A DNA stretch of 64,000 nt from Ascidiella aspersa. Its lineage: Eukaryota. The notes under the pieces were generated by a model. It made no database searches and had not been told where the DNA came from. It saw only the letters and a list, made by a program, of their open reading frames with translations. The stretch lies in NCBI GenBank assembly GCA_963924565.1, contig OZ004614.1:18414001-18478000 (forward strand), written 5' to 3'. This document shows positions 54,501-55,463 of the stretch, piece after piece; positions within the stretch are counted from its first letter, which is position 1; each line of letters begins with the position of its first letter. The position numbers and the translations under genes are program-made.

Positions 54501-55249
54501 TCACAGATTCACCACCCCATCCTACCACCATACCTAAGAACATTCAACTACAAAACAGCACGTAATGCATTACCAGTAAAATCACATACAATCCCCAACA
54601 TCCCAGCGTTAGAACCCAACTGCTATCTTTGCAACAAAAGATACGAATCAAATGTACACCTGTTCCACACGTGTCCCCAGATCCAGACCCCTCAACCACG
54701 TAAAAAACATATACGCCGGCTTCACCACGTACTCCACCACCTATTTTAACCAACACACCCATATATTTTTCGTCACACTCCCCCAAACTCCACTCCAAAA
54801 CAACGATCTAATCACGCTCTTAAACACCATACTTCACCACACAATATGGAAAACACGAATCAAGAAAGCCATAGCCCTCACACCTGACCCCAAACCAACC
54901 CCCAACCGTTTTTTCACTTTTTGATTTTCTGATTACGCTGTCCTAGCCAACTACTTTAAATGCATATCCTAGAAAGAGGGGAGCGAAAGAAGGCAAATCT
55001 TGTTAAAATCCTTTTGTGTTTAATTGGATCGATAAGCATACTCCTCCTTGCAGGAGGAGTGAAGACCAAGTTTCTTTGTTACTTTGCACCCAACTACTCA
55101 AGATTCTACGCCCATAGTGTCGCGTACCTTGTTCACGTCGCCCACTTACTTTTTGTTGCCTGAATTATGATGAGCCCATACCAAAGGGGGGGGTCCTAGC
55201 AAAAAGCCCCAACAACCCTGAGGTCCCTGAGCCCTCGGAAAAAAAAAAA
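51513..55249 (+). mobile_element. Family E Tx1 element (A/B-type ORF1, C/D-type ORF2, endonuclease region deleted) ending in poly(A) joined to histone H3
   Basis: ORF 51587-52531 (LEGIVERKNG, CYRCKEFGHIKENC); RT motifs 53020-53720; CYLC..ESNVHLFHTC; poly(A) 55239-55249. Confidence 0.9.
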
Positions 55250-55463
55250 GCAAACCGCGCTCGCAAGAGCGCACCGGCCACCGGAGGAGTCAAGAAGCCC
55301 CATCGTTACCGACCCGGAACAGTCGCTCTCCGTGAGATCCGTCGTTACCAGAAGTCCACTGAGCTTCTCATCCGCAAGCTGCCCTTCCAGCGTTTGTTGC
55401 GCGAGATCGCCCAAGATTTCAAGACCGACCTGCGATTCCAGAGCAGCGCTGTCATGGCTCTGC
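55248..55463 (+). pseudogene. H3: Histone H3 (canonical H3.2 type) fragment: K4-A7, deletion, A25-L92
   Basis: AAG CAA ACC GC, then [69 protein letters not shown]31 and S87-A-V-M90 mark replication-dependent H3. Confidence 0.97.

Follow-up and report, generated by a model that had tools for sequence, protein, structure and literature searches.

We find the poly(A) tail of a LINE to be fused, in sense orientation, to the lysine 4 codon of a histone H3 gene, and the same nucleotide junction to recur 127 kb away behind an element from a different subfamily of the same lineage, here termed E. Together, these junctions suggest that the E lineage repeatedly uses H3 codons 3–4 as a preferred, albeit not exclusive, landing site for target-primed reverse transcription (TPRT), a reading to which we assign a probability of a little under 0.6. 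That the site preference is real at all, we hold with moderate confidence. The window, i.e. the entire 64,000-nt stretch analysed, corresponds to C8:18414001-18478000 of a 308-Mb eukaryotic assembly; positions refer to the window unless a contig is named, and its features are collected in Table 1.

Read directly from the plus strand, CCCTCGG (55232–55238) is followed by A11, a G at 55250 and CAAACCGC at 55251–55258, such that 55232–55258 amounts to CCCTCGG-A11-GCAAACCGC, after which 206 bases follow at 99.5% identity to the genome's canonical H3. The latter, taken from a tandem histone array 170 kb upstream (L001), starts ATG GCA CGT ACA AAG CAA ACC GCC CGT AAG. Since it reads ACA AAG (T3-K4) at this point, the A-run merges with the target, which may supply up to three (one to three) of the last As of A11. 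Both the direct reading and the match to canonical H3 thus bear out the initial annotation, which had described a tail fused to the K4 codon. A contig assembled from short reads of run X1, which is probably the source sample, covers 55045–55268 with zero mismatches, including the tail/H3 junction and that of a 52-nt deletion further downstream, so the fusion of element and H3 is not an assembly join. It is the context, a LINE 3′UTR upstream and an H3 gene downstream, that makes the junction significant and not the pattern as such: A6GCAAACCGC occurs five times in the genome, as compared to four occurrences of a reversed-pattern control. Other genomic A4/A6-GCAAACCGC matches, whose count equals that of the reversed control, were consequently set aside as background, among them L016 and L017, which have no LINE upstream.

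Beyond the junction, the H3 gene is broken. Positions 55258–55463 are 99.5% identical to array H3, which resumes at GCT CGC AAG AGC (A25-R26-K27-S28). Ahead of this point, 52 nt are absent, beginning with the last base of codon A7 and ending with codon A24. The initial annotation had ascribed this gap to a deletion between the two ARKS repeats. It was right about the extent and wrong about the mechanism, as the loss is out of frame, has at most 1 nt of microhomology, and involves no genuine repeat at the DNA level: between the ARKS motifs, only 8 of 12 nucleotides agree, and the breakpoints lie two bases out of register with them. A second deletion, at ~55463 and 380 bp in size, removed the H3 C-terminus together with the stem-loop. 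From there on, the order of H3 remnant, spacer and H2A matches that of the histone array exactly when the two are aligned, and reads from intact units stop as loose ends at the spacer joint. Two observations on this segment may be added. At 55290, two contigs of run X2 (a second sample) track H3 up to ...GTCAAGAAG (K36-K37) and then pass into unrelated AAAGAAAAATTGGCAGAGGG; they represent a further broken H3 copy that is missing from the assembly. Within H2A, position 55857 is a G in 86 of 88 RNA reads, as opposed to an A in the window and in 724 of 724 DNA reads of another sample, so the H2A copies that are expressed, or the donor of the RNA, differ from those in the assembly and the DNA sample.

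Table 1. Features of the window around the fusion of the E element (E1win) with histone H3.
Feature	Positions	Strand	Remarks
Family D LINE (upstream), 3′ end CTGAGCCCTCAAG + A20 tail	51470–51500	+	Tail motif common to ~30 genome copies
H2B-derived fragment GGCTGTCAA(T)GAAG, codons ~10–13	51501–51514	+	E1win 5′ junction, TCAA microhomology
E1win body	51513–55238	+	~700 nt missing at the 5′ end; whole APE domain absent
E1win 3′UTR	54904–55238	+	Ends ...ATGATGAGCCC...CCCTGAGGTCCCTGAGCCCTCGG; 3′-terminal motif conserved in the lineage (tree)
Poly(A) tail A11	55239–55249	+	Last one to three As possibly from target ACA AAG
H3 fragment GCAAACCGC	55250–55258	+	Last base of K4, Q5, T6, first two bases of A7; sole copy in the window
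H3 remnant, A25 to ~L92	55259–55463	+	99.5% identical to array H3; PF00125 match C8:18469211-18469462
Histone spacer after the 380-bp deletion	55461–55608	+	98% identical to L001 2303–2450
H2A histone 3′ stem-loop	55611–55657	−	Rfam RF00032, 39.1 bits, E 7.7e-10
Histone H2A, open 125-aa frame	55680–56057	−	Array homology stops at 56078, ~25 bp upstream of the ATG

The element that bears the tail, E1win (51513–55249), is a degenerate LINE of the L1 superfamily, 5′-truncated, frameshifted and devoid of an endonuclease. Still recognisable are an ORF1 remnant (51521–52054), an RT remnant in six frame pieces with one stop (52573–54903) and a zf-RVT domain (PF13966, 1.4e-08) within the ORF at 53907–54749. 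Its 3′-terminal motif, CCCTGAGGTNCCTGAGCCCTC-A(n), exists in ~30 copies genome-wide. The nearest relative (L003, C3:15.157 Mb on contig C3) is 93% identical and has a flank unrelated to H3. A recombinant origin from families D and E was considered and rejected, as the ORF1 part matches the full-length relative E2′ (78–82% identical) and not family D. Similarly discarded was G-to-A hypermutation: a sense strand with ~12% G is native to all members of the lineage, and the changes accumulated since E1win and L003 split (68 vs 52) are symmetrical, with no G-to-A excess. A sense strand with ~12% G is also seen in the LINE families at window positions 42000–55250 and at related loci, their proteins being rich in P, T, N, H, I and L, with APE and RT still recognisable.

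To which class does the lineage belong? EH1, a better-preserved relative inside the histone array, encodes ORF1, APE (PF03372, 1.3e-22), RT (RVT_1, 3.4e-35) and zf-RVT. The sister element F4575 has an APE domain (PF03372, 8.3e-17) and an intact ORF2, of which residues 2–880 align with human L1 ORF2p (E 1.7e-63). The domains of EH1 and this alignment therefore place the E lineage among the APE-type, poly(A)-tailed non-LTR retrotransposons of the L1 superfamily (L1/Tx1). Among named sequences, the best relatives of the LINE proteins in the window are 'pol-like' proteins of ascidians (Phallusia, Clavelina). The view of the initial annotation that the tail of family E meets the K4 codon in the geometry of TPRT is supported: the element is an APE-type, poly(A)-tailed, L1-like LINE, and its tail abuts H3 codon 4 in sense.

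At the other end, alignment with E2′ reveals that E1win is joined not to the 5′ part of H3 but to an H2B-derived 9–13-mer located behind the A20 tail of a family D LINE; canonical H2B reads AAAAAGGCTGTCAAGAAG at this place. As histone units are ordered H4, H3, H2A(−), H2B, H1, this implies the loss of 3.1 kb separating two LINE landing sites in a single unit, comprising the rest of H2B, H1, H4 and the 5′ part of H3.

The second 3′ junction is found at C8:18342594, where an E-type 3′UTR (CTCGCAAAGAAG-A7, element E2) is followed by GCAAACCGCCC and then by AGTAGGGATTGTCTATCCCT, leaving 11 H3 bases between the tail of E2 and the head of E2′. This junction is duplicated at C8:18494631, 25 kb from that in the window and 93–97% identical to its counterpart. 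The head sequence AGTAGGGATTGTCTATCCCT is confined, genome-wide, to six places, each a 5′ region of an E-lineage element, and is also present near the 5′ end of EH1. Window position 55249/55250 and C8:18342600 both read A(n)|GCAAACCGC, each behind a different E subfamily. A third E 5′ end (E3, C8:18498635) has the sequence GCAAACCGCC-AAAGTAGGGATTG, its surroundings being neither H3 nor poly(A), and at the homologous position EH1 carries GCAAATTGCC, a degenerate match (8/10) to the H3 10-mer. Three E-lineage 5′ ends hence bear the 10-mer, two of which lie outside H3. Taken together, the 10–11-nt H3 piece occurs between stacked elements and at these three 5′ ends, with no element retaining both target copies intact. 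Roughly five to seven E-lineage 3′ ends can be regarded as independent, and two of them are followed by H3; three of ~7 lie inside histone genes, which make up ~0.3% of the genome, and this points to an enrichment of E-lineage 3′ ends in histone genes.

The search for junctions between poly(A) and H3 that the initial annotation had proposed thus recovered the same nucleotide junction at C8:18342594 and its duplicate, while the short pattern alone returned background. Its prediction that other E copies be followed by H3 as well came out mixed, as L003 and several others are not. With respect to element 5′ junctions at H3, the 10-mer at three E 5′ ends supports its reading, and the attachment of E1win to a piece of H2B does not. 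Three further candidates for histone-related joints were dropped. A derivation of the first 34 nt of EH1 from the H3 leader fared no better than shuffles (196/300) upon free local alignment to the whole histone unit, the match of the sequence upstream of the E3 5′ end to a 3′ end of family A or B was not significant, and the resemblance of the L037 flank to the H3 leader is a chance 11-mer. A head-to-tail stack of a different kind is seen at L030:642-720 and L033:614-690 (C8:18330541 and 18487913), where a LINE tail of A7 directly abuts a 5′-truncated, EH1-like 5′UTR with no histone piece in between.

Are the two junctions independent of one another? Much of this region belongs to a 43-kb segmental duplication, in which C8:18300685-18343280 is collinear with C8:18469608-18497606 at 93–99% identity. 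The first copy extends from the distal edge of the array, i.e. its last histone unit, to ~43 kb beyond, and the second, 169 kb downstream, comprises the window from 55608 onward (to 64000) and beyond. Part of the segment is present a third time, at window positions 34793–42582. The E2–11-mer–E2′ arrangement is found in both copies and must therefore be older than the duplication. The H3 gene paralogous to that of the window is intact and still has H4 and H1 upstream of it, so the E1win junction arose as a later, separate event in the duplicate, unless homogenisation of the array erased it from the other copy. E1win is 71–80% identical to the distant E2, as compared to the 93% it shares with L003. 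The H3 junctions of E1win and E2 accordingly represent separate insertions that differ in their timing with respect to the 43-kb duplication. The stack is not explained by unequal crossing-over within one element, since E2 and E2′ have different 5′ regions around the 11-mer; an H1 fragment, itself fused to a zinc-ribbon ORF, precedes the upstream one. From these separate junctions, at least two bottom-strand events at AAAG|C are needed, along with two or three 5′-junction events 10–11 nt downstream. The H1 fusion is an observation in its own right: at L044:1734-2300 (C8:18336234-18336800; duplicated at ~4965–5300 of L008), an open frame starts from the histone H1 ATG, covers ~64 H1 codons (Linker_histone, PF00538, 1.1e-12) and, with no change of frame, passes into the cysteine-rich zinc-ribbon ORF of a LINE. 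The H1 piece immediately follows the poly(A) tail of a different LINE, with the joint 24 bp upstream of the H1 ATG.

Several findings bound the specificity that can be claimed. Most E copies do not reside in the H3 target. Like L003, the E-like tails at L006, L019 and L025 have unrelated flanks, and so do ~20 dispersed copies of sister families (within the wider LINE superfamily) that share the 3′-terminal motif of E. The presumed nick site, TTT/G, is a weak, generic site of the L1 type. At their 5′ ends, both elements on the H3 side are joined to pieces of other histone genes, namely of H2B in the case of E1win and of H1 in that of the distant E2. The junction of H3 5′ sequence with an E 5′ end that the initial annotation had predicted (ATGGCNCGNACC/element; of the form ...ACAAAGCAAACCGCC(C)-AGTAGGGATTG) is absent from the assembly, which contains 8 of ~190 H3 copies. 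In an independent DNA run (X21), read depth amounts to ~1200x for H3, ~15–20x for the E body and ~6x for single-copy sequence. These depths translate into ~190 copies of H3 vs only ~2–3 of the E1 type, and the fraction of H3 units that carry E1 is therefore tiny at most. Depth in X21 is zero over 55093–55153, and the E1win copy of the window may be private to the sequenced individual or absent in others. No RNA reads cross the E/H3 junction, the few sense-strand reads stemming from a paralogue of the E body, and related LINEs in metagenome contigs (43–47% identical) have no histone gene nearby. EH1, finally, sits 10 bp upstream of the H1 start codon. Its copies at C8:18264701-18270676, 18275384-18281337 and 18291731-18298180 are 99.8–99.9% identical, and their identical 5′ junctions and shared flank variants indicate that one insertion was amplified within a 10.7-kb higher-order histone repeat.

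How might L1-type elements arrive at the same H3 codons more than once? In the scenario we favour, an L1-type RNP would nick the bottom strand of H3 within 5′-GGTTTGC/TTT/GT-3′ (codons 3–4), with the precise position of the nick being presumptive. The Ts of the bottom strand would then prime on the poly(A) of the E RNA, and reverse transcription would set the 3′ end of the insertion. The top strand would open 10–11 bp downstream, putatively after CAAACCGCC(C), whereby GCAAACCGCC(C) would become a duplicated target piece of 10–14 bp, the piece found between stacked elements as well as at the 5′ ends of full-length E copies. Sitting in sense a few codons into H3, an element could be transcribed from the strong S-phase H3 promoter, although its use of that promoter is conjectural. 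Progeny would land at ordinary A-rich sites, too, and for this reason the preference would be strong and not exclusive. The 10-mer at the 5′ ends of three E sub-lineages is best read as flank carried along from source copies resident at the H3 site. As for E1win, its 5′ end would have been joined, via the TCAA microhomology, to the site in H2B that sister families use, at the cost of the 3.1 kb, and the 52-nt and 380-bp losses from H3 would have occurred either later than the E1win event or during it, an order that is again presumptive. The preference itself might sit in the endonuclease, in pairing between RNA and target, or in tethering to the histone locus.

Could the same picture arise with no specificity at the level of insertion? 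An L1-like element might have landed once or a few times at a generic A-rich site in the 5′ portion of H3, with promoter trapping, array dynamics and segmental duplication spreading the copies thereafter and the 10-mer being inherited or RNA-borne, with no re-cutting. We consider this unlikely, while giving it serious weight. Dispersed copies with random flanks outnumber those sited in histone genes, the H3 leader and first codons offer only about four A-runs, and the region, a duplicate of the edge of the array, has been heavily rearranged. EH1 did multiply with the array, as its three nearly identical copies attest through their common junctions and flank variants, and the presence of the 10-mer outside H3 in E3 and EH1 is what one would expect if it were borne by the RNA. 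E1win, however, is 5′-truncated and without APE and must have been dead on arrival, which means that promoter selection cannot explain its position. It also belongs to a subfamily other than that of E2 and arose after a duplication that already bore the E2/E2′ junction. The layout of tail, 10-mer and 5′ end further needs two cuts at the same positions, and the same architecture exists at one H2B position in two divergent lineages.

A chance rearrangement, in which deletion or end-joining within a graveyard of transposable elements placed an existing poly(A) tail beside H3 codon 4, appears improbable to us: the break would have to coincide with the junction nucleotide of E2, 127 kb off, and with the 10-mer start of three E 5′ ends, and the A-run merges seamlessly with the target AAAG, as in TPRT junctions. 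The idea draws on the at least three other deletions or rearrangements in the same 14 kb (52 nt, 380 bp and the 3.1 kb of histone unit) and on a 5′ flank of E1win that is not H3. Hardly credible, and already largely refuted, are a chimeric retrocopy, formed by template switching between H3 mRNA and the poly(A) of E RNA, and an artefact of assembly. Such a switch would indeed yield the order E–poly(A)–H3 with a 5′-truncated H3, and the array is collapsed in the assembly, with 8 of ~190 H3 copies and a 200-N gap. However, the H3 remnant continues into spacer, H2A stem-loop, opposite-strand H2A and eventually the 43-kb paralogous homology, so this array-like stretch is genomic DNA and not a copy of an mRNA, and the independent X1 contig spans the junction. 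Recurrent, TPRT-mediated insertion of the E lineage at H3 codons 3–4 is thus the reading that we carry forward.

The E lineage is not alone in its proximity to histone genes. The array itself (C8:18245162-18301155; L001, L002 and L010–L014) is composed of 4713-bp units of H4, H3, H2A(−), H2B and H1; as the assembly holds 8 H3 copies vs the ~190 implied by read depth, it is largely missing. The aforementioned gap lies at C8:18256257-18256456. Sister families display tail-A(n)-GGCTGTCAA(GAA) at one H2B position, in two divergent lineages, and further sister-family insertions are located in the H1 leader. It is tempting, if still tentative and somewhat short of an even bet, to view E as the H3-codon-4 specialist in a guild of L1-like LINEs, each with its own site in the 5′ portion of a histone gene (H3 codon 4, H2B codons 9–10, H1 and H2A leaders) and transcribed from histone promoters, with the array serving them as rDNA serves R1–R9; these LINEs would then be the first retrotransposon family specialised on protein-coding genes. 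A LINE with both frames open may be recorded here as well: L039:231-5912 (C8:18282230-18287911) encodes ORF1 (523 aa) and ORF2 (1141 aa, with APE, RT and zf-RVT), and lies inside the array, ~97 bp upstream of the H4 ATG, with 4 bp duplicated (AACG) and ~55 As in its poly(A) tail.

Position and orientation of the E junctions are reminiscent of R1 and R2, the site-specific LINEs of 28S rDNA. These elements occupy a fixed nucleotide position, in sense orientation, within a tandem and highly transcribed gene family; a short target piece between stacked elements, dead 5′-truncated copies and flanking graveyards are typical of them. What E has in common with R1/R2 is the recurrent position, the sense orientation, the piece of target between stacked copies and the graveyard by the array. 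Unlike theirs, its target is a protein-coding histone gene, in the codons of the N-terminal tail, its specificity is leaky and the occupancy of H3 units by E1 is very low; its enzyme is L1-like, i.e. neither of the restriction-like R2 type nor of that of the R1 clade. SLACS, CRE, CZAR and NeSL-1 insert in sense near the 5′ end of short, strongly transcribed genes in tandem spliced-leader arrays. They employ restriction-like endonucleases and target RNA genes, whereas E is APE-type and its target is a coding sequence. Keno, a target-specific Tx1-clade (L1-like) element, resides in U2 snRNA genes. To our knowledge, all well-documented target-specific LINEs reside in RNA genes, telomeres or simple repeats.

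In the literature, transposable elements associated with rDNA have been reviewed (PMC10946416), and most target-specific families fall in the early-branching, Tx1 and R1 groups (PMC4640811). Mutsu inhabits the 5S arrays of zebrafish (PMC5340908), and RNA genes and repeats are known to host target-specific LINEs of the APE type (PMC4640811, PMC5340908). With Tx1-clade and L1-like elements such as Mutsu and Keno, E shares the APE-type, L1-related machinery (domains APE, RT and a C-terminal zinc-binding one) and the use of multicopy genes, its placement reaching the level of the L1/Tx1 superfamily; their known targets are RNA genes and microsatellites, that of E is a histone gene. Human LINE-1 resembles E in its end-to-end ORF2 similarity (E 1.7e-63), a poly(A) tail primed at T-runs, frequent 5′ truncation, microhomology at 5′ junctions, target deletions and mostly dispersed copies. 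It has no recurrent nucleotide position in a gene family, whereas E repeatedly ends or begins at H3 codons 4–8. A full-text literature search turned up no description of a LINE that specialises in histone genes.

If true, our reading would extend the strategy of finding a safe haven in a multicopy gene to protein-coding genes, namely to the coding sequence of a core histone. It would also provide a natural system in which to study how an L1-type endonuclease or RNP gains site preference, with bearing on engineered targeted insertion by L1- or R2-like elements. Moreover, it would inform on how a histone array tolerates or purges insertions, given that ~190 units are clean and the flanking graveyard gathers broken ones.

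One further feature concerns the very 3′ end of these elements. An Rfam scan of the E1win 3′UTR returned no snoRNA family, the sole match being the H2A stem-loop. The last ~75 nt (window positions 55168–55238; L038:6534-6610; L007:5515-5584) nevertheless resemble a box C/D kink-turn module, with a stem AGGGC...GCCCU around AUGAUGA and CUGA and a conserved internal hairpin. By way of such a conserved, box C/D-like end (AGGGCAAUGAUGA...CUGAGCCCU), the RNP might be directed to Cajal bodies or histone-locus bodies, which would confer targeting at the level of the locus. E1win itself has mutations in the 5′ half of the stem.
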